NCBI GenBank assembly: GCA_011109175.1 | Contig: RDEW01000034.1 | Coordinates: 242,140-306,139, forward strand | Reading direction: 5' to 3' | Length of the DNA stretch: 64,000 nt | DNA from: Dicyema japonicum | Taxonomy: Eukaryota; Animalia; Dicyemida | Shown: positions 19,605 to 41,165 of the stretch, in pieces | Layout of the letters: each line of letters opens with the position of its first letter | Position numbering within the stretch: position 1 is the first letter of the stretch | Notes under the pieces: model-generated | Databases searched by the model: none | What the model saw: only the letters and a program-made list of their open reading frames with translations | What the model was told of the DNA's origin: nothing | Program-made: the position numbers and the translations under genes

Positions 19605-19915
19605 CCATCTACATGTGTTGATACATTCTCTCCGAAGAATTTGGCCGCTTTAGTCTCTGACCTAATTTATGCTTTTGAAAAAGCCGAAGATCACAAGAGA
19701 AGAAAGTACTGAAGCATTTCGGAGGATCACTTGTTTGTCCCATTTGCTGTTGAAACGTAAGGAATTTTTGGCACACAAGCTGAAGATATAGTCCGAAAGA
19801 TAGGCTCAATGATCCAAAGGGTCATCAAGGATCGACATAAGACTGGATGGCTTCGGGAGCGTATCTCAATAGCCATTGTCAGAAGAAACAACATGGCCAT
19901 TCAATCTTTCTAAAT
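19605..19915 (+). mobile_element. CRE RLE 3' end
   Basis: TCVDTFSP..KAEDHKRRKY..FVPFAVET*G..WLRERISIAIVRRN*. Confidence 0.85.
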
Positions 19916-20019
19916 TAAGTGCTCTTTTAACTTTAATTTTTTTATGTTCAATGATTACGTTTGCAAAAAAAATTTTTTTATTCAATCATTTAAATCAATA
20001 ATGTTAATTCCTGACAAGG

Positions 20020-20340
20020 TCTCCATTATCGGCTGCTGGCATCGAGCACGCATGGGAGTTATTTCTCATTGTCATGAGCTTAATTTTCTGGAAGAGGCAT
20101 CGTTTCATTCACTCTTCCGCTGTCCTCCAAGCAGTCTGATTGACATGCTAAAATCAGTGTGCTCGGGCCAAAAATGCCAGAAGTCTCAATTTAGATCTAC
20201 TGTAATTTGAACCAACCCCCAATGCCAAATACTTTTCTTTTTCAAAACTTCAGTTCTTGCTGCGAAACCCGAGCGCGAAAATGACTTAAGCAGATTCGCT
20301 TTAGTGAATCCTGTCTATATCCGCAATTGTGGTAACCCCT
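20020..20340 (-). mobile_element. CRE RLE 3' end
   Basis: Homologous to 23360-23830 and 57190-57500 (ETSGIFGPSTLI motif region). Confidence 0.65.
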
Positions 20341-21099
20341 CCAGTTGACTAATGAAAAGCAAGATTCTTTTTGTTATCAGCTACCCATTGGGCGTCTCTT
20401 ACAAGTTATCAAAAAAATAAAGTAGTTTTTAAATTTACTGATGACTTCTTTACCAATTCTTACTACCTCCCCAGAAGTTACGAGGTGATTGAGATGAAAA
20501 GCATTTTTCAACTTCCTTAGTTCACCAGAGTACGATGATCTTTGAAATGTTTTAAATTACTATAAAACCTTAATTTTCTTTTTCTTTCAATGAGAAAAGT
20601 CAGATATACTCAGAAAGAAGATAAGTGACGACAAATTGAATATATCCAGTTCTCGCTACTGCAGATGCAGAGACGAGTCCTTCTAATGTTACACAAAAGT
20701 CTTTAAGAACCATAGGTAAGTTAAGAGAACTTACTGTTATGTAAACTTGCAGAAATACATACACAAGAAATAGATAGAGTTGTGAAAATTTGTAGCCGTA
20801 GTTTCATCAGAGACATAGCAACATCAGTTCAACATACAGCAAAGCTCATTGAACTACGGTTCACTGACATTTTAAAGTTTGTAAGATATTAAAAGTTGAT
20901 TAATCGTTACTTTCGGTCACACGGTTAAATCGATTTTACGGATCGTTCTCAACCTTAAATCATTGTCAACTGGTCACAATGATTTATTTATTTTGTCTCA
21001 TTTTGAACGTCTCAGAACAAAGGAACAACTAAAAGCAACATTCAAACGTATGGAGATGCTGGACTCACAGACATCTCTATTCCTGCTGAGAACGCCTTG

Positions 21100-21620
21100 C
21101 CAGCACAAAAATTAAGCTACGTTCTTTGGGGGCACGTTGTTATCAGAAAATGCAACACCTCAAACTATCGATTCCATCTTCAGGACCACTATCGAACGTC
21201 TTACAAATGTTAATTTTGATGACCAAGGGTGGACCAAGCAACCTGACCTGTTAGCTTTGGTAATCTGGGAATCCCCTTACTAAATGATTTAGCACGCCCT
21301 GCGTATCTGTTATTCTTGTGCTCCAGTCAGTATTTGATCAAGATGATTCTCTAACTCCAAACAGAATCGATGGAGATCAGAGATATGGAGCATCTGAGAG
21401 TCAAGATGCCTGAACAGAAAGACTGATAGAGGTCCATCTGCGAAGATAAATATGAGAGGCTTCTGAACCAATCAAGCGAACACCAATGTGCTTGTCTAGT
21501 CACTGGAAGATACAAATTGAGTGGCACTGATCAATGCACTCCCAATCGGTAGCGTCGGTACCCACCATGATGACGATACTTTCCTCACCGGTAATCGCCA
21601 CATGACAGCCTTATTGCTTT
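21100..21620 (+). mobile_element. CRE RT thumb fragment
   Basis: KLSYVL..IFRTTIERLTNVNFDDQGW.QA.LPVSFG.LGI..LA.PAYL. Confidence 0.7.
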
Positions 21621-22010
21621 CATACAATAACTACGTAACAGCTTAGAATAACACGGTGGCTCTTTCAAAACATTAACTCGCGATCATGAGAGGTCCTTTT
21701 TTCACAAACTTCATTAGCAGACTTATTATAAAGTGGTCTGAAAAATGAAAATCTATTAAAATTATTTTAAAAAACCAACCTGCTATATATGTCGATGACT
21801 GTTAAGATCCATTCGGTAAGGGATAACTCGTCTAGAAATAACATGTAATAAATATAATTTTTCTGCATTTCATATTGGGTTTACGAGGAGTATGCGAGCA
21901 AATTCCGGAACTTGCGTAGATACGAAGATTTGCATTTACGTGAAAACTTTTGGGAGGGAAAGTGAGAATTTAAACACAACTTTGAATGATTTTTCAAATA
22001 ATATCATTCT

Positions 22011-22334
22011 TCACAGTAAAATATCGTAGTTGACATTCATATTCGATTTTGTTGACTCCTCCATATGAACATTCTTGTAGGGCTTTGTCAAGATCTCCAT
22101 TACAGTTTCAGTATCAAGGGAAATGAGTAATTTAAGATCTGAATCTTTGAATCTGAGATACAACCTTTTGATGATAACAAATGTACAATATTTTTCTTTA
22201 ATTATACAAAAATTATGAATCTTCTTAAGTAGTTTATATTTTCCTTGTCTCGTAAGATGTTCAGGGAATTGCAAGACGTCTTTCAAAATTTCATATTCTG
22301 AACTATCTTTCACAAAACCTCTGCAAGAAACCAA
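22011..22334 (-). mobile_element. Ginger/GIN-like integrase transposon N-terminal fragment
   Basis: 107-aa ORF EYEILKDVL.FP....KYKLLKK..NF....LY similar to the 51075-51323 ORF, upstream of an integrase Zn-binding region. Confidence 0.5.
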
Positions 22335-22499
22335 TAAAAAAAAAAAATTTGAAACACGCTAGATATTTAGGGTTGCCACCATAAAAATAAAATTCTGATA
22401 ATCAAAGATATTTGATTTGACCTTTTCAAAGTTAAAAAATGTAACTTGCCCATGCATAACCAGTCGGCCATGTGACATAGCTGGCCACTCGGACGGCCA

Positions 22500-23090
22500 G
22501 CAAAAGAAGTGTCTTACTTTATTGTACGAACAATTAATTAGGAAGACGTTAAACTATGCCTGAAGTTGGTCACTTGCATAGCACAAAAGTTGCAGCAGAT
22601 TCAAAACTCAGCATTGAGATTCTAACTGGCTGTTTGAAATCATCTCTCGTTGGGTATTGCACTGGGAGTCGAAGATCTGAGTGACCACCTTGAAATGAGG
22701 AACTAACAATATCTCAGACAATCGCTTGACCTAAACCTCCCAACCTTTCCATTATTTGAGTTCACAAATCGTAGACACATATGGGGAACATTTAATGATC
22801 TTCAAAGAACACTCCAGAAAATTCCACTTCGGGATAAAGACCAGACCTATACCGATGTAGACTTTGCGTCTACTCGTCTCATACAAACCATTGAAGAGAA
22901 CAAGATTAGCACTTCAGAAATTCGTCCAAGGGCCGTCAGACTAGAACTTTCTCGTTTATGATGTGAACATCATCAGTTTATGGTTGGGAGATAAGATCAG
23001 GATCTTCTTGATTGCTCTGTGCCACATGAGCTAGACGTCAAGGTATGGTCTCTGAGAGCGTCCTCGCAACTTTATCAATACAGTTGAATT
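22500..23090 (+). mobile_element. Jockey/I-like LINE RT C-terminus and 3' end
   Basis: TLNYA..ILTGC..LHWESKI..HL.MRG..VRLELSRL.CEHH. Confidence 0.6.
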
Positions 23091-23359
23091 CTTTCGCAGC
23101 ATTTACTAAACAAGAAATGCTGGATACTCTAACTCCATGGTTTGATAATCTATTTGATGTTTTTTTTAAATCCATCTATTATGAAACCACTTTATTCCCG
23201 TCTCTTTTTTACATATTTTACTAATTCCGACAACACACTAATAATATGAAGAATCATTGCATTAGACAAATATTCAAGACAACCACCGAGTAAATGAAAT
23301 AAGTTGACATTAATTTTAGATTTTTTTGGGAAAAACAATTTATTAACATAAAGTAAAGT

Positions 23360-23830
23360 TGTTATGACAGATCCTTATTATGACCTGCAGGCATTGAGCC
23401 CCATGGGCGGTACCTCTCATAATCGCTAGCCTAATGTTCTTAAAAAACCATCGCGCCATTCTGATTCAATCTTCCGCTTCCATACAATCCGTCTGAGTAA
23501 CCTGATAAAATCAGACGTGCTTGGGCCAATAACACCAGACGTCTCAACGGAGATCGGCTGGAAAAAGAACCGATCCACGATACCGTGGTACTTCCTACTT
23601 TTTATTTATTCGGCAGTGCTCGCTGCGAAACCCGGGTGTAACAATGACAAACAAATTACCATTGGAGAAAGTGTTCATGCACGTTGAATTCTAAGAAGCA
23701 TGATTGTTACGTCATCCAGCCTCTTTGTCAACGCCGAAGGCTCCAGAAAGCAAGTAAACCTTGCGTCTTCATAGCTCACGTGACAGTCGCGTTTAAAGTG
23801 GTGTGACGAGAGAATCTCCGGAGCTTCGTC
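23360..23830 (-). mobile_element. CRE RLE 3' end
   Basis: KYHGIVDRFFFQPISVETSGVIGPSTSDFI; tail ctcaatgcctgcagg.cataa..atcataacaactttac shared with ~57460-57500. Confidence 0.8.
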
Positions 23831-24199
23831 TGCATGACATTAAAAATGAAATCGTATCTTTTAAAAATATATATTATTACAGTTTATTACCATCAACTCC
23901 CATTTTTAAATTTTCCATATTATTGGAAAATATTTTAATTATTATTCAACCAAACTTTAATTATTATTCAACCAAACTGCCAAGTGGCGCCAACTTTAGT
24001 TTGGTGCTATGTGACTACTTGAATTGAAGCTTTTTTGTTTTTTTTCCTTTTCTTCCTCTTTAGCTCCAAGAGATTGAATTGTTATCTCGTCATGTGGTTC
24101 ATCATCTATGTGGCTTCAGATATAATCCTAAGTAATACAAAAAAGGGACATTAGTCAACAACCATCGTGGTCAAAGAGCCACGGCTGCCGACCCCTGTC

Positions 24200-25660
24200 C
24201 TAAAGGATTACAAAAAAATAGATAAACCAACTTTTATGGAATGCTGATTGGGGATCTCACTTCTAATGAGAGGCAGAAGATCATGACTATCTGCACAATC
24301 GATGTCCATACAAGGGATGCTGTAGAGAAATTTTATTCAGCAAAAAAGTTCATATTGGGCACTAACGAGTAGGTTGAGAATAGTCAAGTTTTCACGTGGC
24401 TGTGCCAACTCAGACACTGTGTGATGAAACCAAAAAGGACTGCTTCATTAAAATATGTGACGCCATCTTCAGATATTCCCATGAATACTTGGTTGTACTC
24501 CCAGAATGGTTATAACTCTACTAACTGATCGGTTGCATCCTTTAATAGCTGAAACAACTAAGGATTTGGAGAAGCTCATTGGAATTATGGCCTACATGTT
24601 CAACTGCTAGGAGAACATATGGATTGTAAGGTTCAAACTGTTTATGAATTAGTCCGCTGGTAATATTTACACATGACTGACTCAATCAGGGGTTGGAGAT
24701 GCTTTGTTGTGTTTAATAGAAAATCGGTGTAAGTATTATCAGTTGTGGTGAGGTTGATAATATTCAGGACATTAAGATAAGAAAGATATTCATTTTATGT
24801 GAAACTGGGTACTACCAACTATTGAGATATTTCTAACTATGAATTCTGTTATGCCGGGGTACTGAACTCCCGGAAAACTCGAAGGCTTTATTCAGCCATA
24901 TAGTTATCTGATTTTATGGCCATGTGTCATGTTGTCTCCGATTTTGAGATGAATTGTGAAATTGGTGAAGGCTTATCGGATGCGGAGTTTTGGCTCATTA
25001 GCTTAAAAATCTGTACAGTTTTGCAAGGAACTCATTTCCAAACAAGATCACTATAATTGGGACTTTGAGCCATCAAATAAGTCCTGGTTCTCTTAAAGAG
25101 CAGATTTACAACGACCGGAAGACCAGGTAGACTAAACATTAACATTTTAGGTTCTCATGAGAGCTTGAGGGACTTGAATATACCAAAGATAGTCACTGAT
25201 ATTTCCCATTTTTATTGGACTGATTAGAGATTTTTTCACTTCTATTGATGTCCACAGAAAAGGGAATTTAGAATTGTGAAGAACATTCGAAAGGCTACCC
25301 CTGACCTGAAATTACAACCTGAGGAAAACATTATATTAAAAGTTCATTTTGTCATAAATTGTAGGTCGTCCAATTGGTGGAACTGCTGGAGGTCTGTCAC
25401 TCTGTTTTTATCAGTGGAAATGCAGGGGTTAGTAATAGCATGACTTTGCAGATGTTTTTAAAGACACACAGGAATCTCAGATAGAAGGGACTCGCCGTGG
25501 ATCTTAATCCTAAGGTCGTCAGGAACGATGAACTCTACGGAGTATTAAACCTGGCAACGAGGAAATTATCTCAAGTATTCAAAATTATGGTTATTTTACG
25601 TGATGCTGTCTGGTTCTTGGTGAATAAAATTGTATTGGTGTGCATAATGCCTATCCCTGA
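24200..25660 (+). pseudogene. DNAH: Axonemal outer-arm dynein heavy chain (DNAH9/11/17-like) pseudogene, part 1 (linker end, AAA1, start of AAA2)
   Basis: [86 protein letters not shown]|VLMRA (24-nt intron 25127-25150), VVQLVELLEVCHSVF, DLNPKVVRNDELYGVLN. Many stops and frameshifts; the AAA1 P-loop is deleted. Confidence 0.9.
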
Positions 25661-25699
25661 AATCTACTGAGCATCAACAATCAACTCCCTAAATCCACC

Positions 25700-27960
25700 G
25701 AGTATCATCCCTCAATATCTTCTGAGTCATGCCTCGTCCTTTGCAGGGAAGTTCCCCGTACCCTGCCACTGTTAACTCTCCTGCTAATTGTCCACCAGCC
25801 ACGGATCCCGAAACAATTTTGCGCCTTCCGCACCGGGATTTGATCGAGATGGTCACGAAGAAGAGTCTCTCGCTGCCGCCATGAGGACCAACATTCGTTC
25901 TTTTATGGGAGGAACTCATATCCCCAGTTGCCCCACATCTACTAACCATACGCGGGAGACACATAATCCGAACAAGGAAGTGAAAGTGCTCCGTCTCAAG
26001 AGAACTGTTCTTACGCAGTTAATCGAAGGTGGTACCCGCGCAGTCATCAGGGTATTTTTTTCAAGTGAACTTATAAAACCGACTCCCGGAGTCTACAACA
26101 TTTTGCTGAACAAGCACTCTCTGCCACCCCACAGCCAACTCCAATTGCTCCTCCAGCCGAATTGAGTCCCCATGAATGCATCAACGATGAGGTTCTCCTC
26201 GCAATACGGAACAGTGGCGTGCTAGACCGAATGAGACCTGGCCATCTGAAAGATCTAAATCTTTGTCAGAATGTGACCAGGAACTTCGTCCTAAGAATTC
26301 AATTACCTACTTATGAACCGGATTCTGTCTGGAGTACTTCCTGAAGTTGTCCGCCATGTTCTGTTCTTTACCAACTTGATAGCCTTAAATAAGAAGGGCG
26401 AAGGAGTACGACCGGATGTGGTTGGGTTTATCTCCATAAGGCTGGCTGTTAAAATTGTTTCAGACATTCTATTCCACTCGTCACACAAGATACTCCCTTT
26501 AGGATTCTGAGGTGATAAATTTAGCCGTCAGTTGCTGGATTGGAATTAAATTGCAGTAAATACGAAATCTACAATTGTGGACATATATAAAAGATGCATT
26601 AACATGCTTTGTCATCTTTCGCGAATTTACTAGCTGGAAGTATTTCCACGCCCTATAAAGTATTTCCACCTAATATGGATATTCATCAACCAGACAAAAA
26701 TATCCTTCACGAAGAAATTGAAAATCTCGGGGATCACCTCTGACATAAACATGTCCTATTTTCTCACTTAGAAGCATCTCCGGCAGCTGGTCGAGAAATC
26801 TAGGTATAATCAAATGTATTTTTGGTGGCACTAAGACTTTTTTTAAGGATTGAAATTTTTCTACAAACAATTCATTGAGCCATTTGTAGCTATGCTTGTA
26901 TGTCATGGGGAATCAACCTGTCATTGACGAATGAGCAAAAAATCATTGACATTTAGTTTTTGACAGCCATTACTATTAATAATTTCGAGAAACTAGAAAA
27001 ACTATTCGCCTAATCACTTGAAGACCTTATCCGACGAAATAAATTTGGCTTCCTGTGCAGGCAGGGCAACTCCCACAGTACACATCCATGACGTGTTTAT
27101 GAGAAGGGTATACATCACCCCTCTCCGATTTCTATTCCCCAAATCATCTTGCACACAGTTAAGTTGCGTTGGGTCCTAGAAGGCGCACAAGGAGAAAATG
27201 AGAAATTTGATTGAGGCCTTCGAGATCTAGCGATTCTGTAACTCTCCATACCTTAAATAGCCGATTCATGATTGATAGATGAACTGCAAACCCCATTCAA
27301 TAGTGACGGCTGTCGAGTAGTAGTAGTGTCAGCCAGTAATTTATGTAACTTACACCCTGATACACTTTCGCTCTCGCATCTTGCAAGCGCCATAGGCGGA
27401 ACCCTAAGTATTAATGTGTTTATGGGTAAGGCGGGAGTGCATTTAACTAGCCTCTAATGCTCAATTCATTAATTTAATGATGGAAGATTATTCCTGGAAA
27501 TGTCACCTAAAAAATTATTTGTGACACTCTTTACGTCTTACAGACAACAATATACAAGGAACCTAAGACTACGATTAATGATGTGACAATCCATTTTACA
27601 GCTACAGAAATCATTAATCCAAGGAAGAAATCCAAGTTAGAACATCTGCCTGTGCCGACCAAATTCATTTTCCAAATAGTCCATTACAGGCCTTATCTTT
27701 AGAAAGAGGTAGCAAGTAGGTCCGTCCTCTGCCATTTTTATCACACGTCTTACTTCGCGGACATCACTTCATTTTTAGGCAAAGAATTTTCATAATGGTA
27801 ACCTTCACCAGTGGAGTTGGTCAGGGAGAAGGCATGAAGGTCCTTTTCAACAACTATGTCGTGCTAGAAGGACTCCGGTTTACGAGAATTGACCTTTGTT
27901 AAAGAGTCCATCGGGTTAGACCTCACGGCAGTAAGATCCGATATCATCAGACGTTACTTT
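25700..27960 (+). mobile_element. CRE element 5' half (N-terminus and RT) in pieces, interrupting the dynein pseudogene
   Basis: GVLDRMRPGHLKDL, LNRILSGVLPEVVR..FFTNLIALNKKGEGVRP..VG..IRLAVK (25900-26510); further same-strand RT pieces at 26940-27270 and 27690-27960. Confidence 0.7.
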
Positions 27961-28054
27961 CAGCCAAGAGGGCCTAGTATCCTATTATTGTAGACAATCT
28001 TATTTTTATATAGATACTGGGATCAACAACAACAACACCAGAGATCACGATCAC

Positions 28055-28380
28055 ACAAACTAACTAATCACGTGATACCAGCACGCTCTAGCAAATGCCT
28101 CATCTTGGCCCGATGCTTCTCCCTCGTCCCCGCACAAGCACGTATCGGTCGAGTGACTAGACCTTCGCAGTCACGACGGCGCGATCCGTGGTTCATTCTT
28201 ATCAAGGCTTCAAGAGGCATTGGTGGCTGGAGTTCTCCAGAAATCTAGCGTTCAGTGACTTTGGAGGCTCTTCTTTCGGCTAGTTTCGATCTTCAAGACA
28301 TTCGTCTAAGAGATGAGTGTACCCATATATCGCATTCATAAGAGATGCATGGTTCAATAAATTGTTTATATACAGTTCCC
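28055..28380 (-). mobile_element. LINE RT C-terminal 3' end (family shared with 61200-61540)
   Basis: Close nucleotide homology to the reverse complement of 61200-61540; IYKQ..EPCISY motif. Confidence 0.65.
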
Positions 28381-28439
28381 AAAACAGAATGCTTTCCGAT
28401 CTTCTATAAGCCTGTGAGGCATTTCAGAACAATAGTTTT

Positions 28440-30140
28440 TTTTCGCATTTCGTAATTACGCTTTTAACATGGACAAGAATGACATATGCATGTCAAAAGT
28501 CACCCCAAAGATCCTTGGGATTTTCTATAAGGAATAGCTTCATTGTTTGCCTTTAGTTCGACCGTCCGTATTCCCAGTCTCTTGTCTGAAGTAAATAGGG
28601 TTGTGACAGACTTTTCACTGATAGTAGTTAGGCGATTCTTCGATAGCCATTTGTCAAGCCGGTCCAGATTTTCTTGCAATTTCAAAATGGCAATCTGGAT
28701 GTCTGATCGCGTGAGGCAATGACGATGTCATCGGCATAAGTTAGAATAATATTATTTTTGGAGTCTGGAGTGAAAGTCCGCCATGAATAGGTTGAATAAA
28801 ACTGAAGACAAAGGGAATCCTTGGGGAATTCCGTTAGGGAGAAGCCGTGAAGTAGACCTTGACTGGCCAATGCAGACGCGTCCCCTCCGATTACTAAGGA
28901 AGTTAGCTAGCCAGAGTTTGAGCTTTCCAGGGATCTTAGGTAAATTTTCCAAGTAAGAATCCGCCTTGACAGAGAGTCGAAAGCCTTGTGGATGTCTATG
29001 GAGCAAAGTATAATCTTCATGTGTCCCGGTCTGTGCGAGAAACCATATCGTAAAATTAGTCAATGCAGATAAGTGGGTCGAAGTAGACCTTTCCTTTTTA
29101 AAACCATGTTGAAATGACAAATCCAGAGGAAATTGATTTTCGCAAGAACCAGCCTTTCCAGAATTTTCGACACCGAGCACAATAACGCGAGCGGTCTGTA
29201 TGAAGCTGGGTCCTTCTTCATTTTACCGGGTTTCTAAATTGGACGTAAGTGGGCCAACTTCCATAATGCTGGAATACAATTTTTGTTAATGGAGTGATTG
29301 AATATCTTCGTTAATGCAGCGATTCCATAGTCTCCAGATTCTTTAGGAGGATCATTGGGATCTCATCCAGTCCGTTAGAATAGGCTGTTTTAATGGCTTT
29401 CAATGTATATCTCACGTCGTTTTCAGTGAAGTGAATCGTTTCCGGTTACTTTTTCGGTTTACTGAGATGTTTCGGGGTACATCCGACTTCTTATGGTCTT
29501 TATGGGATATTTTCACATAGTATTTTATTAGGTTGTTTAAGTCCTTTTGGCTATGGTTCACATCGGACGATCTTTCATCCCTCTCGAGGCGTCTCGGATG
29601 GTCTTCCAAATTACAGTAGTGGGTCTATTTCTATTCAACGAGGACAACACATGCTTCCATCTTGATATTTGTGCTCTTGCCTCCTGTTTTTTAGTTCATT
29701 GTTCAAAGCCTTCAAGTCTAGATTTATCCTCAGAAGTTAATCGGTCAGACTTTTTGAGTTTGTTTCTTTCCTTGGTTAATGTCGACCTGCCATATCCCCT
29801 GGTGTATTTTAGGTGGTGTTTAGGTACAGATAGTGATCTCGCGTCCAAGATAGTGCGGTTTACATAAGCGACTACTTTGTCCATGGAAGTAATACCATCC
29901 AGGTGCTGCAGTAGATTGTCAGTAAGTGTACGGTAATGTGTCCAATCTGCCCGTTTATCTTGCCTCTTACTCCATTGATATTCAGTTGAAGAACCGTGGT
30001 CCGTTTCTTGCGGTTGACTAAGGGTTCCTTTCGGGTAGATGAGGATGATAGAGCATGCCGCCGGGAAACAGTTTCCTCGGAGGTGGATGTCTAATGGTGC
30101 TCTTTGGAAGAGCATTAGGTGCTCTCTGGGAGTTACCAAA
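28440..30140 (-). mobile_element. Jockey/I-like LINE (APE C-terminus plus RT), degraded
   Basis: QHGFKKERSTST, WLANFLSNRRGRV, NGIPQGFPLSSVLFNLF, LTYADDIV, LQENLDRLDKWL, KRADW. Confidence 0.88.
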
Positions 30141-30286
30141 ATTTACAGAATCGGTGAACCACATAACGCCACTCTACTGAAAAACTTAATAAATTTGACT
30201 TTTTGGAGTTATTTAATGTTATTTATTTTATATATTTAAATAAAATTTAGTGTTAACTTTTTAAATTAAAATTAGTTTTATTGTCA

Positions 30287-31752
30287 TTAAATGCTTTCTA
30301 TCGTTTCTTTAATGATTAAAATAGCTTCCAATAATTGCTCCTCTGTAATAGTCAATGCCGGTGTAAATCTAATTTTATCCACGTGGGTCGTTTTTGTGAG
30401 AATTCCATTTATCATTAATTTCCTGCAAATTTCATCTGCGTTGTATTCTATGAATTAAGCGGACATTTCGACTTTCATCGATCACGATTCCATTAAGAAG
30501 ACCTTTGCCACGGACAGTTTTTATATATTTTGGGTCGATCTTGTTCATTTCCCGTCTAAAATTTGTCCGAGGTATTCAGCTTTCTCAGCGAGGTTTTCTT
30601 CTTCGATGACCTAACAAAAATAGTGATCACATCTACCTTCAAAGCTTCTAAGGAAACTTTACATGCTAAAGGATTCCCCCCAAATGTGGATCCATGAGTC
30701 CCGGGTTTCAAGGTCAGCATTATTTCGTCATCGGCTAGAACACACGATACCTATTTGAAGGTTATAGACGAGGAAATTACTGGTAAAAATCCACCAGCCA
30801 GGGATTTCCCCAAAATGAGAATATCTGGTCTCACTTTCTCATGGTCAACGCAGATTCGCCAAAATTTTGTCAAATTCAAAATACTTGCCAGTTCTCCCAA
30901 GTCCAGTTTGGACTTCGTCCGCGATAAATAAGACGTTGTTCCTTTTCGTTATTTCCCGTACTCCTTTGAGATACCCTACTCGAGGGAGTCACGATTCCAG
31001 CTTCTCCCTGAATAGGCTCAACCATAAATGCGCACACATATGGATCTCTGCAAGCTCTCTACCAAATAAAATGTCCCCGAGTACTTCTAAGCTTTCCAAG
31101 TCGTCGTAGGGGATCATAACATTTCCAGGTATATAAGGACCGAACTCTTCATAGCACACAGGATCGCTAGATGAAGATAAAGCTGCTAAGGTCCTCCCCC
31201 AAAAATTATTTAAAGTGAAAATTATTTTGGCTTTATCCTTCGGTATTTTTTTGATTTGATACCCCCATTTTTTAGCCAATTTGCAAGCGGTTTCTCCTCC
31301 CTCACTTCCTGGATAATGATTTGGGTCAAATACCTGAATTCATAGGCAAAACCTTGTCATAACCAAACAAGTTGGTTATGTATTCCGAATATTCTGAATA
31401 AATGTTGTTATGAAAGGCACGAGATGTGAGAGTGAGAGTATTCGCTTGCTCAGTTATCGCCTTCACCAACCGAGGGTGGCAGTGTCCTTGATTCATGGCG
31501 CCGTATCCACACAGGAAGTCGTAATATTGCTTCCCAAACGTGTCCCATACATAAGGCCCTGCAGTGATAATTGGAGAGGACCTTTTCCCTCCTTAATTAC
31601 TACTCGTTGTGGAGCATAATTGTGAGCAATATATTTATCTACCATTTGAATCAGATGTGTGTCCTCTTTGTAGATTATTCCGTTTCTCACAGAAGAGACT
31701 GTTTGAAACGAATTAATTTACCCTTTTTCGAAAATTTCCTTAAAAAACACAT
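30287..31752 (-). CDS. OAT: Ornithine aminotransferase (mitochondrial, class III PLP aminotransferase), 9 exons
   Basis: Spliced translation gives [93 protein letters not shown] (PLP Lys)..[35 protein letters not shown]. Introns at 31699-31721, 31559-31581, 31309-31333, 31059-31084, 30860-30884 (GT..TG), 30751-30780, 30611-30636 and 30448-30472. One 1-nt frameshift in the run at 30558-30561. Start ATG uncertain (in-frame upstream ATGs exist). Confidence 0.93.
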
Positions 31753-31959
31753 TTGCTTCAGCTCGGATAATAAAACCAACATAATTTGCTTTAAATAGGC
31801 CGAACCGAGAATGTGTCTATTAAATAATATATCCATAACTTTCCTAGAATTAATTGTTTTTACACAGAAATTGTGATATTTATACGAAATCCAGTTTCCG
31901 TGGTCGCAGAAGCAGGCATCTTCCAATATTAAACAAAAATCCATCTAGAATCGGCAAAA

Positions 31960-32060
31960 GGGAGTTAAACATCAAGGAATCTCTTCAATTGAGTGGCGGA
32001 AAACAAATGATCGTTTTACACTGGGAGTATCTGAGACTGGTGGATCCCATAACACCACTC
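31960..32060 (+). mobile_element. CRE 3' fragment
   Basis: ctgagactggtggatcccataacaccact matches 57371-57400. Confidence 0.5.
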
Positions 32061-32329
32061 TAGTAGAATGAGGGGAGATATGGAACTGAGCATACACAAG
32101 CACGTTACGGAGGTATAACCGGATCCATGTAGTTGAACAGGAACGCTCCTCGGTTTACGGATTAGAGATTCCAGAGGCACTGGAGAGAAAACCTTCCTAG
32201 AAGTCAATCTCCCTTAAACTCTGAATTCCCTTTTCTGGTTAGCTTTAGTCTCCACAAAAATGCCCAATGGACCCTATGAGGCGTATGTGTATGGAATGCA
32301 TAGTTATATGTACGACTTGTCGACGGTCT

Positions 32330-32730
32330 AAGTATATATGTGTTTTGGCCTACACCCCTCTCTGCAGGAAGAGTGCAGCAGATCTGCCAGATATATGGCT
32401 TTGAACGAAGTCGTTAGGTGAGCTTTGGACGCCGCTGGACACCTTCCATGCTCGAACCAGTCGATCTTTGCAGCCGTGACGGATAACGACCAGATGGGAT
32501 GACCATCTTCCCCTTTGAAGCCAGGAAACCTCTTGTCTGTGACGTCTTCCCTTTGCAACCTATCCAGAGCCTGTTCTGCCGTTGAGAAAGCCGAGAGGTT
32601 GAAACGGGAAATATACGCGGTCCTACCCAAGGATTTTTTATTGGTCCATTCGTCGTTGAAACGTCTGGTTCCCTTGGCCTGCGACACTGGAATTCTTGAG
32701 TCTTCTAGGGCAGGAGTCGGCAACTGTGGC
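32330..32730 (-). mobile_element. CRE zinc finger/RLE fragment
   Basis: Degenerate G.H..SC..SKGR..RH..LN..I...L....SCRE motif. Confidence 0.6.
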
Positions 32731-33769
32731 TTGAGTTTTTTATGTGACTCTTATTGAAATTGATTACTTACATCCCATTAAAAACATTCTCAAGATAGTG
32801 TTCTTCTTCCAAAATGTTTTTTATTTATTTAAATTATTACATATTTTTGAATATTTTTATTGAAGAAATTTTACTCGCTTAATCACAAATTATGTTTGAC
32901 TCTTCAGTAAAGTGTTTAATTAAAAAAATAAGTAAAAAACGGATAGAAAACATCTTTATAAACTTCAATGGACTGAGATTTTTTGCCATCATATCAGATG
33001 ACTTTCCATAATGTCTTTTTTGCCACGGAAAATTCAACCAGAAGAAAAAGTCAAATCTGGAGAGACACTAATTCAAAGCACGGTAATTTTTCAAGAAAAT
33101 ATCCAATGTTAAAATTGAAACTTCAACATTTAATTATTGGAAACAGTCTGCCAGGACTTATAATATCGGAAGCTTCATCGTCAGTCATGAGATTGCAAAA
33201 TTTAGAATATCATTCGCGGATGGTGAATACATCAAATCTTGTTTTCTAAAATAGTCACAACAATTATTTCAAAATTGTACGAATAAAACAGATTTTAAAT
33301 CAAATTAAAAAATACATAGTTATCTGCAAAACAATTGCGAATTGTCTTAATAAGATATCATGTGGCGAGTCAAATTACTGATGTTAATTTGTAATCTTGT
33401 CTTAAGTTCAAAATGACAAGTCACAAGCCAGACATAACATTATTGGCGAAGGAAATGCAGGGTCAATTATCTCATTAATTTGATTAAATATAATTGTCAA
33501 CGTCCGTATGTGGAACTCAACAAAAACCAATCAAAATAAAAATTAGTTATCAAGATAATTCAGATTTTTCTAGTTGAATGTTGTAATTTTTAGTTAAAAT
33601 CGGTAATATTTTCAAAACATAAAATAGCAAAAAACCAGTCAATATGAATAGAGTGTCATTTTAATTAAATTTTATTATTCATAATTAACAAAAAACTTTA
33701 TTAATATTTAAAAATAATAAAAAATGAAGACTTACCTATGACACATATTCTCAAATTATTACGAATTTT

Positions 33770-33900
33770 CCCTAGACTCTAGGGAATCGGATTTCTGCAC
33801 GAACAAGAGATCCCCGTGAGTTCAACTGGTTATTTGAGCGAATCTCGCTCGCCATCCTGAGAGGGAATAGTCACCAGATCAGGACGCCCGTTTGACTTTT
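33770..33900 (+). mobile_element. CRE extreme 3' end abutting dynein part 2
   Basis: LGNRISARTRDPREFNWLFERISLAILRGNS, then an AT-rich tail. Confidence 0.85.
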
Positions 33901-33944
33901 GTTCATTCTATTTTGTCATTAGTAAAATTTTGTTTTAAAATTTA

Positions 33945-36300
33945 TCAAATTCAAGCAGAAACGCCGTAAATAAATTATTCTTGATTGTGGCATTAATCCA
34001 ATGTGGATCGAATCTATGAATATTGTAATGAATCATAACAAAGTGATCATTTACTATATTTTAGATGTTATCTTTGCTTAGCAATGAGAAAATTTCATTA
34101 AAACTTCAATGCGAATGATCTTTGAAATTTTTAACCTCAAAACTACAACCCAACGACTGTCTCGAAAGCTGGGATCCAGTTTATTTACCCCGGTGACGTG
34201 GGGCGGTCTCCTAATGTGAACAGTTGGATCGAGGCTAGAGAGGTTCAGACCGAAAAGGCAAATCTGACAACTCTGTAATACAAATTTGTCCCGACTTATT
34301 TGGAAACACTGAGGACCCGATTCAAAAAGATAACCACAATCTCGGATATTGCACCCGTCCAGGTTCAACTTCAAATCGATCCTTTAGATACTTTACAGTT
34401 TACTGGAAATTATGCTGACCCCCGAGAACACCACCCTGGACTGTTCAAACGAACTCTACGAGATATACTCTGTGTTTTCTTGCGTCTGGGCGTTTTGAAG
34501 TTATCTGTTCCAGGATCAACATGACTGAGATATATGTGAATAGCTTACTGACTACCGAGTCGAATTTTCATAGTGGTAGTCCAAGGAATTTAAGCAGATA
34601 AAGTTCCTAACGACAGGAATTCTGTTCGACTACTTCATTGACAATAAGACCTGAAATATGAGCCTTGGAGTAAGTTGATAACAAAATTTGAACTCGATTC
34701 TGACCCAACTCTTCAGGTTCAAACACAGGAAACAGTTAGAATTCTGAGGTTCCTCAACAAATTGATGGAGATTCGACGTTGAAGCTGCCGGGACCGGGAA
34801 GAGTTGTATGCGGAATAAACTGAAAGAACTCTCTGACGACTTTCTCGTGGCAAATGTTCTGTTCAAATTTTACACGACGTCGGAAAAGCCCCTGGAAAGA
34901 AGGCTGGATGGACCTCCTGGGTTGAAGAGACTCATTTACTTTGATGACCACATGAACATGCCTGAGGTAGATAGCCAACTTAAAGTAAGTCTGTTCAGCT
35001 CTACCAGAGATGTAGTATCAAAAACGACCCACAATTTTTTACTGACTGATGCTCAGGTAGACAAATAAACTAGACTCTTAGATCCTCGAAGAACAGTTCC
35101 TGGTTTTGATTAACGATCTACTGTCGACTTGAGAGATTCCCGATCTCTTTACAAACGATGAATACGAGACACCCATCTCTGGAGTCCGCAATGAATGCAA
35201 ATTAACAGTAATGATGGACACAAGAAAAAACTGCTGGAACAAGATCGTTAGGAAGGTTAGAAGAATCTTAAAGGTGAGCACGTGGAATTAGTGAAATAGA
35301 CTATACTGTGCTTTTCTCCACTCGGAATAAGTTGAGAGTCCACGAATGGCCGGAAGATGTCATGATTTCCGTCAGTTACAGACTCCTAAGTGAGGACGAG
35401 CTTTTGACGAATCAATTGGCCGAGAATGTCTCAAAACTCATGGCATTTGTCCACAAATCTGTTAATGAAATCAGCCAACAAGATTAAGCCAAAGAGAAAA
35501 GATATACAACCACCACCCAAGTAATTCTTAGAGTTGATAAAGCTATACCAGGCTTTACTGAAGTATCACCACAGGGAAAATGGGCATTAAAAACTTAAGA
35601 GTACCTCATAACTAGTCTATGATCTGAAGGAAGTTAAATTGACCATAAAGAAAAAACGGGAACAAACTAATCCAAGTAATGGGTGCTGAGTGTGGTGACA
35701 AAGTCTCTACCACCGAATCACAAGAGTCGAGTTAGTCTATCCTCAGCCAAGCTAATCGACTATATCAAGTGATAATAACTGTATGTAGACAATATCACTA
35801 AGTGACGCATGTTGATTTAGTCTAAGACGTCATTAGGTGACTAGAAGCCTTTAGTATATGGAGGAGGTCTCAACTCTCTAAAACTTGAAATCAATAGCCA
35901 TTAGGAAAAAAGTAAATGTGGTTGTTCTAAGAAAACCTAGTTTTACAGCACGGTCAGGTACACCAAAACAAAAAACCTCGGACATCTATTTTATTTAATT
36001 GTTCTCATTTTAGCCATAATAGATTTTCATTAATCTCAGACACAAAAATCTGTCTCTCAAGAAATGGGATATTAAATAAATCTACCAGAAGACCTTACAT
36101 CCTCTATAACGAACGACATGAGAATACAGCATTGTAGTTCTCTTGAAATCGATAAAGTGGATCGATGGTTATATTTTGTTAGCTTTTACAAAAAATGAAA
36201 ATCCTCTAGTTTAATCTGTGTCATGAGCCAAAGAAAATCTTCAGTATTGAAAATCTAAATTCTAACCGTAATCTCAGCAAAGCACGAGAAAATGGGATCA
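33945..36300 (+). pseudogene. DNAH: Dynein heavy chain pseudogene, part 2 (rest of AAA2, parts of AAA3/AAA4, stalk and AAA5 remnants)
   Basis: INPMWIESMNIVMNHNK|MLSLLSNEKI (22-nt intron 34043-34064), TVSKAGI, NSWIEAREVQTEKANL, LRTRFKKI, AAGTGKS, KPLE..GPPGLKRLIYF..MNMPEVD, LLTDAQ|..FLVLINDLL..EIPDLF (25-nt intron 35057-35081), LCFSPLG (26-nt intron 35274-35299), HEWPE, MAFVHKSVN. Large internal deletions. The last ~600 bp is only weakly recognisable. Confidence 0.85.
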
Positions 36301-36319
36301 CTTAATTAAAAAATTCCCT

Positions 36320-36660
36320 TTCTTACCTCTGATGGCGTCATTGGATCCACCTTATAAGGAGACTCCCAATGCCTGGCCGGCATTCAAAAGGATCCAACTA
36401 TTCATTCATGGGGACAATTTCGTTCCTTGTCGACGAGTTCTGAAATCGACCTCAACTCCATGGATGACGCCCTCTGGATCACTGTTCTTGAGGAAGGTCT
36501 TGCTGGAACGCGTCAGCATCAAGGAATTAGTTAGTTTGGTTTTATCCGTGGTCTTGAGGCAATTTTGTTTATTTATGAGATATGCCAAAATTCTTATCAC
36601 GTGGGATGGTGCGTTAATAAACAAATCAAAAAGGTCACACGTGACATGGAAAGCTCGTTT
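36320..36660 (-). mobile_element. NeSL/Utopia-like RLE 3' end (copy 1 of 4)
   Basis: Homologous copies at 40320-40700 (-), 51440-51690 (+) and 60750-60990 (+). The terminal SNDAI(R/K)W/G motif resembles the NeSL/Utopia C-terminus; clade call tentative. Confidence 0.5.
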
Positions 36661-36696
36661 ATAATATTTAAAATAAATAAATGAATAATTTTAATA

Positions 36697-38270
36697 TTAA
36701 TTTATGATTGAATTAAAAATTGGTTTGTAAGTTGGTGATGGTCTTTGGATGGTTATCGGTGAGCAACTAGCAAAGATAACGAAGATCACCCCGCAAATAA
36801 ATTGTATGCTAACCAGAAGCACGAATGTGTATAACCATTGAATTCCAGTCTCTAAAACACTCAAATTCAATTACTATGTCTGTGACTATCATTGAAGTGA
36901 CTAATATAAAAAATGCACTCAATAGTGATCCAAAGCTGTTCACAACTCCCGTAATGTACTCACTGTGATTCCTGTCGATATCTTCAATGTTTGAGAATGT
37001 AATTGAACTACATATTCCAGTACAAAAACAAGCTATTATGATAGAGAATTCCCCCAAAATTGCGTTGGATGTCAATGAAGCGAAAAGTAAGGACAATCCT
37101 GTAGGTATGAGACCTATTTGAAAAAATTGATCTCAACCGATTATGGCGAACAATTTAACAGCAATCAGCTTTTTCAAGATTTTCTTTTTTACGAGTAAAT
37201 CGCAAAAAGGAGTTCCAATGATATCTCCAAAACATATAAAGATGGGAAAGATGACAAACGGAATTTGCTAAAATAACGACATAATCAACATTTTTGACTG
37301 TTTTATGGTAAAGACCATCAATCAAGAATGGAATATATGTACATATTCACCACCAAACTTAAACTTCCGCAAATTTGAACACCAGCCACTGCTAAAATTG
37401 ACACTGAAGTAAAAATTTTCTTGATTGGTATATCCAGTAACTAAAGGTAACTTAGATTGATCATACATTGTAAACTTTTAATTCTTTTACTTATCTACTC
37501 AAGCTTTCCTTCTCATTGATTAAGATCCATGTGTTATCTATGGGAAAATCCGTTATAAATATCATTAGTAAGAGACAGCAGATCACCTCAAGGGCACCTA
37601 AGATGACGATAAAAATGACAAAAATGCTAAAATGTTAAATGGCAGTTCCCATGGTCCATTTTTATATGAATTGCTTGCCACTGCTATGTAACTAAGAAAT
37701 ATTTCCAAAGTATGAGCTAACCATAATGATTCGACACCTGACGATGCCAATTTTATTATTTTGTTTTTTTCTCTGGTGGAGTCCAATTTTGAATAAACAA
37801 ACATAGAGAAGGCAGAATTCCACCCTATTTGTTTTTTAGACAGCATTGAACCTGAATAACTCCCATAATAAATCTAGCGAATCCAACTGCATAGGTGGAC
37901 CTTTTCAAAGCTGATGGAAGTATGACAAAAATTAACGTAGATTGTATAGTCATTATTAGAATCATGAATTTTGGTCCGTATGTGTAAGACAGGAAGGGAC
38001 CGATCAGTTGAGAGAGGCTGTATCCTATGTAGAAAGTCATTAGAACACCTCCCCTCTCCAAATTTGAAAAAATAATATCTTTCTATTCCAAATGACCTGA
38101 TTTAATACATTGTGAGGATTTTTTGAATCAACAGTCAAAATAACGGCCAAGGTTATGCTGAAGCAGTGTCTTTGAGCCTCCATTATTAAAATACACATGA
38201 ATCCAGTGAGTGCCGTGAATAAATTTCCTTTGGAAATTTCTTACTGGTTAATATTCTGCCTTACCAAAAT
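36697..38270 (-). CDS. SLC17: SLC17/anion:cation symporter family MFS transporter (sialin/VGLUT/NPT-like), micro-intron rich
   Basis: Spliced peptides ERGGVLMTFYIGYSLSQLIGP, FARFIMGVIQGGILPSLCLFIQNWTPPE, WELPFNILGALEVICCLLLMIFITDFP, IPIKKIFTSVSILAVAGVQ, SNIEDIDRNHSEYITGVVNSFG and FICGVIFVIFAS follow the SLC17 TM pattern. Introns at 38083-38108, 37825-37851, 37717-37737 and 37598-37626. Frameshift in the 7-nt run at 37764-37770. The 5' end and middle exons are only partly resolved. Confidence 0.75.
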
Positions 38271-38499
38271 GTAGCATTTATGAACGCAGTAATATGCGTT
38301 TATATAGGCCAGAAAATAATAACGAACTTCGTTTCCTACAGAAGAGAATTATTTTATGAGCGACTTCAGATAGTCTTTAAGAAAAAACGAGAGAGATCAT
38401 TTTGAGCAAAAGGACTGTGTTCGTCCGCAGGACTTGATGAGACCTTACTACTAGTTATCGCCGCAGGATCCCTTAATTAAACTGAAAAAATTTTTCAGC

Positions 38500-40030
38500 T
38501 AACTAAGTAATGACAAAAAATGCTGTGTCGAGTGTTCCTGTTCACATTGGACACGTCGTGAGCGCATATCTAACGAGTTTTAAAGGTATCTAAGAAGGAT
38601 TTCGTAGAGGAGGTTCATGGTGGGTTGGATGTTAACAAAATTGCTTCAAGATGCATAGACTTTAAATTAGTTCAATCACTCAGTTTGCTGCTTCTTTCAT
38701 TATGGTTAACTTGTGCGAGGGAGAAAGAGAGATTTCCAGTAACCATGATGATTGTGTTGCTTAGGAGGATTCTTGGTGTTATTCTATAGTGCTTTTTGAA
38801 TTAGAAAAGATTAAAAAGGGTTACAAAGGAGTCAACATTGAGTCCTGCAGTTCTTGTATATCAGAGTGATGTTCGATATGCTTTATCCCTGGTAATATGG
38901 ATGATAACATCGGCGTATAAGACAGAAGGAAGTGTTTGTCGAGAGGTTATAGCATGTAATCTACACACAGGTTGAGGTTTGTCGGTAAAGTCAGAACCTT
39001 TGGGAACTCCGTTCGAAAGAAGCAGGCATTCGATCTCAAGAGAACTTGTATAAATTCTCAATACACTTTTTATTCACTTCAAGATATGTCCAAACCACGT
39101 GCAACAACAATTTATTAACTTTAGAGTTAAGAGTATTCTGGAGAGTATTACATTGAGTGCTACCTTTAAGGCTTGGACTCTCTCCCGGACCCTTCCTCCT
39201 ATTTTAATTTTCCCAAAACGTTTCTTCCAGTTTTATTTATGTGTACTGGATCTTTGATATCCTCCTGAAAGCGTTAATTTGATTCTCCACAATCCTGCTG
39301 ATTATTGCTAGCAGCTTGTTTTTGTCCTCGCTTGACAGTCTATCTCAGTTTCTTGTTTAAGGAGAGCTTAAATGCACCTCTCGTTGTTTTCTCCAGGAAA
39401 GATAAGATCTTCTCCTTCTTTGGAGAAAAGAACCATCCTTCGCACCACAAAATAGGCTAGGGAGAATAATTCTTTTAAGATGAACAGGTAGCTAACGTGC
39501 AACTTTTGTATCCATAGGAGTGACTGAAACGCTATTGTTTTCATCCCCCTTATGTCCTCCATGCAATCTTCCACGTGTCCATAGTCAACGCCCAAATGAC
39601 TCAGACTGCGTGTATTGTTAACTCCCAGTTTGTATTCAGGTTTCAGTGTTTTTCCTATTGCTTATTTAGAGTGCGCATGGTAATTTTACGGGGGTAAATC
39701 TAATCCAGGAACTAGAGGTAATCAATGCAAGGCTCCTTAGCGGAAATTTAGGAAAGATAGAAAAAACGTCAGACAGTTAGGTAAATCCCAGTTCCCGCAA
39801 TCAAACGAGCCATCCAACGTCTGTGGTCTCCCATTGTTCCCACTACCGTGCGAGAGAGCCAACCAATCGAATTTCTTTTGCCTTGGAAAAGAAATGGCTA
39901 AGCGGGTTTCCGTCCTTTTTACAGACCTGAAGGAATCCGGTGTTTGCGATTCCCTTGATCTTCCCATAATAATTTAATCCGTTAAAAGACATAAAAGTTA
40001 ATTCAACTAATATGAAATAAAGTCCATTCA
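38500..40030 (-). mobile_element. Jockey/I-like LINE, degraded (APE N-terminus to RT)
   Basis: LTFMSFNGL (APE start), LSNGVPKGS, SVLYADV. Confidence 0.7.
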
Positions 40031-41019: not shown

Positions 41020-41165
41020 GTCAATAACGACACGTCGTCAATCACTAACGACAATAGTCATTCAATAACGACAATATTCAATCATTAATGACACGTCGTC
41101 AATCAACAACGACACTTGGACAATCAATAACGACAATATCAATCAACAACGACATAATTGCGACA
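41020..41165. repeat. Degenerate ~20-21-bp minisatellite, ~7 units (caatcaa(t/c)aacgaca...)
   Basis: Units such as caataacgacacgtcgt, caatcactaacgacaatagt, cattcaataacgacaatatt, caatcattaatgacacgtcgt, caatcaacaacgacacttgga. Confidence 0.85.

Follow-up and report, generated by a model that had tools for sequence, protein, structure and literature searches.

How does a multi-exon ornithine aminotransferase (OAT) gene come to lie, introns included, on the opposite strand of a retrotransposon that itself splits a dynein gene? This question is raised by a 64,000-nucleotide stretch of the Dicyema japonicum genome (contig RDEW01000034.1, positions 242,140 to 306,139), called here the window, whose first letter is position 1. 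Two dynein halves (24196-25604 and 33940-35709) are separated by an 8.3-kb insert (25605-33939), and both ends of this insert are formed by the two halves of one ~2.9-kb non-LTR retrotransposon, TE-A. In place of about 730 bp from the middle of TE-A there are 5.7 kb (26661-32340) containing repeats, a young LINE and the minus-strand OAT gene. Most probably, the locus is a stack of ordered nested events, with OAT-bearing DNA acting as break-repair filler in a TE-A copy that lay in a dynein fragment. The features of the locus are as follows (numbers with the prefix C denote other scaffolds).

24196-25604, plus strand: part 1 of the dynein heavy-chain pseudogene fragment, copied at the DNA level from C112 2182516-2180931 (DNAH9/17 type), blastn 81-88%
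25605-26660, plus strand: TE-A 5' part (leader, end of the PHD-like finger region, first half of the reverse transcriptase, RT), 74-80%, collinear with six copies of 2.7-2.9 kb
26679-27227, no strand assigned: Repeat B, unclassified interspersed repeat, >30 genomic copies at ~80%
27228-27604, no strand assigned: low-copy spacer, its only other occurrence being the C87 copy
27605-28025, no strand assigned: older LINE-related repeat fragment, with matches in C57, C90, C168 and C146
28026-30183, minus strand: young 5'-truncated LINE with a (TTG)n 3' tail; RVT_1 match; insertion specific to the window copy
30287-31752, minus strand: predicted OAT paralogue with 9 exons and 8 introns; Pfam Aminotran_3; human OAT E = 1e-28
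31753-32340, minus strand: non-coding DNA upstream of OAT, co-transferred with the gene; elsewhere only in C235 (93-95%)
32341-32710, plus strand: TE-A 3' part, endonuclease-like motif region, 70-84% to C2, C35, C57, C101 and C24, collinear with the 5' part
32711-33777, no strand assigned: secondary 1.07-kb repeat insertion within TE-A, also present in C235
33778-33939, plus strand: TE-A 3' end (ORF end and ~45 nt of 3' UTR) adjoining dynein part 2; placed by alignment of 3' ends; closest copy C57, 83%
33940-35709, plus strand: part 2 (AAA2-AAA4) of the dynein heavy-chain pseudogene fragment; blastn to C112; Pfam AAA_7 and AAA_8

The outermost layer is the dynein fragment. Four blastn blocks link it to a parent gene on C112 (window 24196-24544 to C112 2182516-2182158, 87.5%; 24549-25604 to 2182070-2180931, 80.6%; 33940-34990 to 2180922-2179790, 81.4%; 34992-35709 to 2178765-2177948, 75%), in agreement with the initial annotation, which had placed both parts in collinear order on one strand. 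It had also put the loss at the break at about ten codons; in fact the fragment lacks only 8 nt of parental sequence there (TATGCGAG), less than 3 codons. Its description of a dead dynein gene is accurate as to decay but not as to the destruction of a gene of the organism's own, the sequence being a 3.1-kb partial DNA duplicate that covers AAA1-AAA4. Part 1 differs from the parent by ~25 indels, mostly not multiples of 3, and gives tblastn matches in shifting frames; part 2 carries ~24 indels and a ~1 kb deletion at 34990/34992. The parental 24-nt intron is kept, which rules out an origin as a retrocopy and, together with these ~49 indels and the 1-kb deletion, marks the fragment as an unprocessed (duplicated) pseudogene. 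The parent consists of long open exons with strong dynein matches, to DNAH9 (2.5e-90) and DNAH17 (1.5e-76) far ahead of other dynein classes, and its predicted product is an axonemal outer-arm beta dynein heavy chain of the DNAH9/DNAH17 type. The insertion point corresponds to an exon of the parent (coding ...LFSVIMRDLSNASG...), ~19 nt past the 24-nt intron, where the parent is contiguous and has neither intron nor OAT. Since the parent keeps its long open exons and is undisturbed at this point, no working dynein was lost at the locus.

The next layer is TE-A. Window pieces 25725-26660, 32341-32710 and 33778-33913 are collinear in one 2.7-2.9-kb element present in six genomic copies (C2, C24, C35, C90, C57 and C101), and the family has at least seven genomic copies. 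Against the six reference copies, the two window halves have the same orientation and are complementary (element positions ~1-1490 and ~2220 to the end), homology to TE-A stopping at 26660. The question whether the two retrotransposon ends belong to one subfamily can be answered in the affirmative: the 5' leader is common only to the C57 copy, and C57 also provides the closest match to the 3' end (83%). Where TE-A meets dynein part 2, this 3' end is intact; on insertion, 8 bp of the dynein target were deleted and no target-site duplication arose. The 1.07-kb insertion, which C235 also has, is missing from other copies and many read contigs, where ~32676-32710 is joined straight to 33778-33829.

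TE-A is predicted to encode, in a single ORF, a PHD-like zinc finger at the N-terminus, an RT in the centre and, towards the C-terminus, a Cys/His motif with RPD...D...K behind it. In the better copies, Pfam returns RVT_1 at E = 2e-5 and 24.8 bits, under the 29.6 cut-off in a decayed copy, and PHD at 21.2 bits, also under its curated cut-off. An Atlas feature search places RVT_1 families nearest among the clusters listed (top score 0.96). Reading by eye reveals a YxDD-type motif (LWYLDDA) and, in the C24, C2, C90 and C35 copies, the series CxCx9Hx3C ... RH ... E ... RPD ... (D/E)xT ... K. The C-terminal endonuclease-like domain has no Pfam or PDB sequence match, and a PDB sequence search with the RT plus C-terminal domain gave no matches. 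TE-A copies whose ends lie inside aligned flanks show no common target sequence. Elements of the CRE clade have target specificity for spliced-leader genes. The initial annotation had labelled the element CRE; with no visible target specificity, and with a dynein fragment as the target here, this label gives way to a broader, putative placement among restriction-like-endonuclease (RLE) non-LTR elements. TE-A is best described as a putative RLE non-LTR element that could only be narrowed to the R2/CRE/NeSL/R4/HERO group. The RLE clades are CRE, R2, R4, NeSL and HERO (Kojima and Jurka 2015, PMC4640811). TE-A resembles them in its one ORF, its putative finger-RT-Cys/His-RPD...D...K order, its defined 3' end, its variable 5' junction and the lack of target-site duplication. 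Unlike CRE, R2, R4 and NeSL, its copies share no target, a behaviour closer to HERO; a further difference is its PHD-like N-terminal finger.

The innermost gene was modelled on the minus strand with a coding sequence from 31752 to 30287 and exactly 8 introns, so that the 8-intron OAT gene antisense to its surroundings, as first annotated, is confirmed. Its exons are:

Exons 1-5, minus strand: 31752-31722, 31698-31582, 31558-31334, 31308-31085, 31058-30885
Exons 6-9, minus strand: 30859-30781, 30750-30637, 30610-30473, 30447-30287

Introns 1-8 measure 23, 23, 25, 26, 25, 30, 26 and 25 nt. Two exons match Pfam PF00202 (Aminotran_3; E = 9e-22 and 8e-11), and the best PDB match of exon 3 is human OAT (E = 1e-28). 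Bacterial-type acetylornithine and GABA transaminases in PDB score 1e-9 or weaker, with the exception of a 5viu chain, named acetylornithine aminotransferase (6.5e-27). Exon 6 contains a 10-residue match to ...LGK(A/S)L(S/A)GG..., which, after human OAT, we take to be the PLP-binding lysine motif. By sequence similarity, the gene is an ornithine aminotransferase, a class-III PLP aminotransferase.

The window OAT, previously regarded as a relocated housekeeping gene, is not the only one, a genome search having found four OAT loci: the window, C235 and two strongly constrained paralogues on C334, both of which contain homopolymer frameshifts as assembled that may be assembly errors. All eight intron positions are identical in the four loci, which means that the copy moved as DNA. 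The DNA-level route that had been proposed is thus borne out, both by these introns and by the non-coding DNA co-transferred with the gene (~590 bp upstream and 100 bp downstream). A simple insertion of OAT into TE-A, in contrast, does not describe the locus, the incoming DNA having replaced ~730 bp of the element. The assembly contains no donor locus for the window OAT lineage among the four OAT loci found.

Several repeats surround the gene. The LINE noted earlier within the interval does carry RVT_1 on the minus strand (28026-30183) but is not part of the original insert, being absent from C87 and C235. It has dozens of genomic copies (85-93%); since both C87 and C235 have a precise empty site with the junction 28025|30184, it is a later insertion confined to the window copy. 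In these two scaffolds, the older LINE-related repeat (27605-28025) adjoins the OAT 3' flank. The 78-aa ORF of Repeat B has no Pfam match. Two look-alikes were discarded: an ORF at 26670-26906 ('FQFLREGYF') recalling a Gln/Glu-tRNA synthetase C-terminus has no Pfam match and belongs to a >30-copy repeat, and a second, inverted OAT fragment at 27225-27503 (two 15-nt inverted matches) is no better than chance (E = 0.38) and lacks similarity at the protein level. Between 22 and 39 kb, scans for Rfam families and tRNAs found nothing.

The nesting order initially suggested, from dynein fragment to retrotransposon to OAT DNA, is upheld by the parent being contiguous across the break and by the TE-A halves being complementary. 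Five steps would account for the locus, and alignments show the first, second, fourth and fifth of them. First, a 4.5-kb middle piece (AAA1-AAA4) of the C112 outer-arm beta dynein gene was duplicated at the DNA level with its introns and then decayed. Second, a ~2.9-kb TE-A with a complete 3' end inserted in an exon-derived part of this fragment. Third, a break within TE-A would have been repaired by at least 3.5 kb of genomic DNA, with the loss of ~730 bp of the element; the filler would have brought in, on the other strand, an old OAT paralogue complete with its 8 ultra-short introns, its flanks and adjacent repeats. The order and the DNA nature of this third step are directly visible; for its mechanism, we infer end-joining or replication-template switching, as in segmental duplication. 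A 12-nt direct repeat (26638 and 26658) is the sole, weak junction signature. Moreover, because no copy of the pre-OAT state (dynein with uninterrupted TE-A) was found in the assembly, it is also by inference that the filler is taken to have arrived in a single step. Fourth, parts of the composite were duplicated to at least C235, C87 and C101. Fifth, the young LINE inserted ~100 bp past the OAT stop codon, in the window copy only.

Unlikely, although with some points in its favour, is a transfer by ectopic recombination or long-tract gene conversion, in which OAT once lay between TE-A sequences elsewhere and was carried with its flanks to the dynein-borne TE-A. TE-A is indeed multi-copy (at least seven copies), TE-A sequence bounds the OAT segment on both sides, and the region is full of partial duplicates with edges in repeats. 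However, such a transfer requires a donor whose OAT already lay in or between TE-A sequences, oriented as here and broken at exactly complementary points, and no such donor occurs in the assembly, where there are only four OAT loci.

It is very improbable that the OAT segment was captured through RNA, by TE-A reverse transcription switching to an antisense transcript of the OAT locus and back, followed by insertion of the chimera. OAT is antisense to TE-A, and in such a transcript its introns would never have been spliced, precisely because of this orientation; TE-A sequence is, moreover, replaced and not merely interrupted. Yet DNA from the promoter side and pieces of other repeats form part of the cargo, as is typical of genomic DNA; none of the other TE-A copies carries OAT cargo, and the other OAT-bearing copies also hold dynein flanks. 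Since they include these flanks, the latter copies are segmental duplicates and not retrotransposed. There is accordingly a very slim chance that an RLE non-LTR element was the vehicle that delivered a potentially working intron-containing gene to a new locus via an antisense read-through transcript.

An assembly artefact, with repeats wrongly joined and OAT not truly between the dynein halves, can be given hardly any credence. The genome is 49% repeats and was assembled with scaffolding and gap closing (PMC6736024), and over 2.1 kb the assembly disagrees with every read contig at ~12 sites. However, the stretch is gap-free (no N gaps in 24-36 kb), and every internal junction recurs in at least one independently assembled paralogous copy, diverged by 5-12%, so that the misjoin once envisaged as a refutation is countered. 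Parts of the composite recur on at least three other scaffolds (C87, C101 and C235), such partial copies being 2-15 kb long and 88-96% identical. The 25605, 26660 and 28025|30184 junctions were assembled independently in C87, the first of them also in C101, and the right-hand junctions 32341 and 33940 in C235. C87 and C235 are separate copies, since they are only 89% alike where they overlap; this mutual identity, their 5-12% divergence from the window and their differing flanks dispose of allelic haplotigs or a single locus. C101 was considered as a pre-OAT state, but its TE-A breaks earlier (window 26498) and is followed by Ns and a LINE, which makes it uninformative. Finally, the idea of an old nested gene, with OAT already housed in a large intron of a functional dynein, is refuted by the exonic, contiguous and OAT-free insertion point in C112.

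The break-repair reading of nested events involves known processes and no new mechanism; what it describes, nested insertion combined with segmental duplication, is a fairly ordinary case in a parasite genome rich in repeats. As with nested TE insertions and unprocessed pseudogenes, the locus has an intron-keeping, decayed partial gene, an interrupted retrotransposon and a younger LINE with an empty site. Unlike in ordinary nested TE insertions, the nested pieces include one that is no transposon, an entire multi-exon host gene, flanks included, that has been conserved better than the DNA around it. When break repair or template switching duplicates or relocates genes segmentally, introns and flanks are also kept, and here ~730 bp of the recipient was lost and a short direct repeat lies at one junction; what differs is that the assembly holds no donor locus, which makes duplication with loss of the source indistinguishable from true relocation. 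Host gene sequence within a mobile element is likewise known from Pack-MULEs, Helitrons and LINE transduction. In contrast to Pack-MULEs and Helitrons, a whole gene and not fragments is involved, the composite spreads with non-TE flanks, and inspection of the two boundary sequences at 26661 and 32340 showed no Helitron ends or TIR. Nor is OAT an ordinary transduction or retrocopy, since its introns are kept and the gene is antisense. The locus thus offers a cleanly ordered example of gene reshuffling in a very small (67.5 Mb), half-repetitive parasite genome, in which retrotransposons, entire genes and partial gene copies are inserted into each other and then duplicated afresh.

What state is the OAT copy in? 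With the frameshifts bridged, there are no stops in 420 codons, and the term near-intact is fair, but it has to be qualified by three lesions: a +1 at ~30987, a -1 between 30561 and 30560, and an AG-to-TG change in intron 5. The +1 of the assembly is absent from every read contig of four runs; at the -1, read unitigs of three runs stop exactly, which suggests two variants. These read contigs are intron-containing and evenly covered and therefore represent DNA, the run search having listed no RNA run, and OAT is listed nowhere in the supplementary tables that accompany the genome and stage-expression papers. Against the C334 paralogues, dN/dS is ~0.01-0.02 with dS saturated. Between the window and C235, OAT exons differ by 2.6% and introns by 1.6%, compared with 6.6% for the adjoining dynein pseudogene; because the low divergence extends to the introns, this could reflect gene conversion and not selection. 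Polarised non-synonymous changes number 2 on the window copy versus at least 5 on C235. On this evidence the lineage was a working gene through most of its history, and the window OAT is its best-kept member; the odds are about even between this copy being still functional and its having been disabled only recently. If it is dying, the locus would show one of the three OAT lineages in the process of being lost, consistent with the reported simplification of dicyemid pathways. If it is expressed, a conserved metabolic gene would have survived relocation into a defunct transposon that lies within a defunct gene, and would serve to test an ultra-short GT-TG intron in nature. Seven of the eight introns are GT-AG; the exception, intron 5, has its acceptor TG at 30861-30860, which is confirmed by read contigs and common to the dead C235 copy.

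In the window, a copy of the ornithine aminotransferase gene (OAT, minus strand) lies inside a non-LTR retrotransposon (TE-A), which itself interrupts a dynein sequence. As the initial annotation had observed, the dynein halves are collinear, retrotransposon sequence opens and closes the interval between them, and OAT sits inside it; of its interpretation, the nesting order and the DNA-level route of OAT stand, while details have to be corrected. Such a locus is of a familiar type, combining nested insertions with segmental duplication. The window corresponds to C268:242140-306139. The assembly comprises 67,542,437 bases in 377 scaffolds with ~37% GC, and is described as 67.5 Mb in 377 scaffolds with 36.7% GC, 49% repeats, a mean intron of 38 bp and a heterozygosity of 1.24% (PMC6736024); the ultra-short introns of Dicyema japonicum are also described in PMC13644364.

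The parent of the dynein sequence is a DNAH9/DNAH17-type outer-arm dynein heavy-chain gene on scaffold C112 (~2,177-2,185 kb, minus strand). Its exons are long and open as far as they were inspected, and match DNAH9 at 2.5e-90 and DNAH17 at 1.5e-76. Four blocks of the window align to it:

24196-24544, dynein block 1, 87.5%
24549-25604, dynein block 2, 80.6%
33940-34990, dynein block 3, 81.4%
34992-35709, dynein block 4, 75%, preceded by a ~1-kb deletion relative to the parent

Part 1 stops at C112 position 2180931 and part 2 restarts at 2180922, with only TATGCGAG missing. Of the parent, the fragment has just ~4.5 kb, corresponding roughly to AAA1-AAA4 (Pfam AAA_7, AAA_8), and no dynein sequence beyond it is found elsewhere in the window. 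Since it also keeps a parental 24-nt intron, directly upstream of the break, and carries ~49 indels relative to the parent, the majority not multiples of three, it is an unprocessed, partial and dead duplicate: dead, as initially described, and not a whole gene. That OAT is an old gene already nested in a dynein intron is refuted by the parent, where the insertion point has no intron and no OAT.

Window 25725-26660 matches TE-A copies on C2, C24, C35, C90, C57 and C101 at 74-80%, and in these six copies the matches to 32341-32710 and 33778-33913 come next, collinear and equally oriented, as parts of a single element of 2.7-2.9 kb. Only the C57 copy has the unusual 5' leader of the window copy, and the 3' end of the window copy also matches C57 best (83%); the two ends therefore come from one element and one subfamily. 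Pfam matches to the products of better-kept copies are an N-terminal PHD-like finger (PF00628) at 21.2 bits and, for the reverse transcriptase, RVT_1 at 24.8 bits, both below cut-off; RVT_1 families were nearest among the clusters listed in an Atlas feature search. With a C-terminal motif read by eye as CxCx9Hx3C, then RH...E...RPD...(D/E)xT...K, the architecture appears to be that of non-LTR elements with a restriction-like endonuclease (RLE; PMC4640811). The window copy keeps the family ORF end and a ~45-nt 3' UTR abutting dynein part 2. As for the original label, CRE, the data go as far as a probable member of the RLE group; neither a target-site duplication of TE-A nor a target common to its copies was seen, so nothing supports the narrower assignment to the CRE clade.

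TE-A homology ends at 26660 and restarts at 32341. About 730 bp are absent between the halves (C2 650868-651594) and are replaced by a 5.7-kb filler; the features here, including an insertion into the TE-A 3' part, are:

26679-27227, repeat B, unclassified interspersed repeat, >30 genomic copies at ~80%
within the filler, low-copy spacer
27605-28025, older LINE-related fragment
28026-30183, minus strand, young LINE with RVT_1, dozens of copies at 85-93%
31752-30287, OAT coding sequence, within the filler
within the filler, 590 bp of OAT upstream DNA
32711-33777, secondary repeat insertion of 1.07 kb interrupting the TE-A 3' part

Other TE-A copies and many read contigs join ~32676-32710 directly to 33778-33829. 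Repeat B has a 78-aa ORF on its minus strand, ending in ...DFQFLREGYFCLVDE, which resembles a Gln/Glu-tRNA synthetase C-terminal motif; its Pfam search gave no match. The k-mer depth in read contigs is very high (30-100x the single-copy level) over 33425-33990 and 32297-32719, which places the 3' region of TE-A and the repeat directly before it among the most abundant sequences of the stretch compared with the reads.

The OAT model comprises 9 exons separated by 8 introns of 23-30 nt, with exon 3 giving a match to human OAT at 1e-28. A genome search found four OAT loci in total: the window, C235:272.8-274.0 kb, and two on C334 under strong mutual constraint (omega, dN/dS, 0.06-0.08):

C334:1481940-1483200, minus strand, OAT paralogue
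C334:1765580-1766803, plus strand, OAT paralogue

All eight intron positions are common to the four loci; the copies therefore arose from DNA, and the DNA-level move first deduced from the kept introns is established. Against the C334 pair, the window OAT has saturated dS, dN of ~0.16-0.20 and omega of ~0.01-0.02; the window lineage is therefore an old paralogue on which purifying selection acted during most of its past. The C235 copy is dead (an 85-bp deletion and several frameshifts). Since the window and C235 copies split, their OAT exons have diverged by 2.6% and the introns by 1.6%, whereas the neighbouring dynein pseudogene differs by 6.6%; polarised non-synonymous changes number two in the window OAT (one absent from reads) and at least five in C235. 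This pattern is compatible with continued constraint on the window OAT; gene conversion could account for it as well. In the assembly, each C334 copy carries one to three single-base frameshifts within homopolymer runs: one has GGGG shortened to GGG, the other has TTT lengthened to TTTT plus a -1/+1 pair. Errors of assembly or haplotype are the probable cause; were the frameshifts real, they would leave the assembly with no intact OAT.

As assembled, the window OAT has an extra T at ~30987, a base missing between 30561 and 30560, and a TG instead of AG acceptor at intron 5, as in C235. One sample, sequenced in four runs, gave read contigs that confirm the TG, have one letter fewer at 30987 at full depth, and contain the conserved E codon at 30978. 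The longest contigs listed for three runs stop exactly at 30560, which suggests two variants there. Bridged for indels, the gene reads 420 codons without a stop. At ~12 sites in the 2.1 kb of 30184-32340 all read contigs of these four runs disagree with the assembly, whose allele has no read-contig support; the assembled haplotype seems minor or different, or locally mis-called.

The composite of dynein fragment, TE-A and OAT-bearing DNA recurs in part elsewhere, at 85-96% identity to the window:

C87, window 18473-22445, 25197-28025 and 30184-30424, then an N gap
C101, window 20885-25309, 25598-25674 and 25937-26498
C235, window 27671-28025, 30184-38632 and 43604-45266

More pieces lie on C157, C2, C311 and C14. 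C87 and C235 are just 89% alike over their overlap and are therefore separate copies. Since other copies independently reproduce every internal junction and window 24-36 kb has no N gap, a misjoin is unlikely. The young LINE is absent from both C87 and C235, which show a precise 28025|30184 join, and is therefore the latest event. The nesting fixes the order: dynein fragment, TE-A, OAT-bearing DNA, re-duplication, LINE. In C87 (a 23-kb scaffold), a ~300-bp sequence occurs twice at the start (positions 1-800), followed by the N gap at the very point where its copy of OAT would be expected to go on; this gap may hide a third copy of the window lineage.

As to the means of transfer, we infer that a gap in TE-A would have been filled, through break repair or template switching, by DNA copied from another locus. 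We favour this because it fits the 730-bp replacement, the flanks and neighbouring repeats carried along, the direct repeat of 12 nt at the left edge of the filler, and a region evidently prone to piecemeal copying. Two alternatives are less likely and have less support: that TE-A copies recombined ectopically, and that an unspliced antisense transcript was captured at the RNA level. Because no donor locus of the window lineage is left in the assembly, relocation and duplication followed by loss are indistinguishable.

Downstream of the dynein fragment, 36650-39100 and 41000-43600 hold further low-copy duplicated blocks, with copies on C2, C311, C157 and C14 at 85-93%, and a ~540-bp repeat at ~43000-43540 has >30 copies at 86-89%. 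Taken together, the neighbourhood is a mosaic of segmental duplications.
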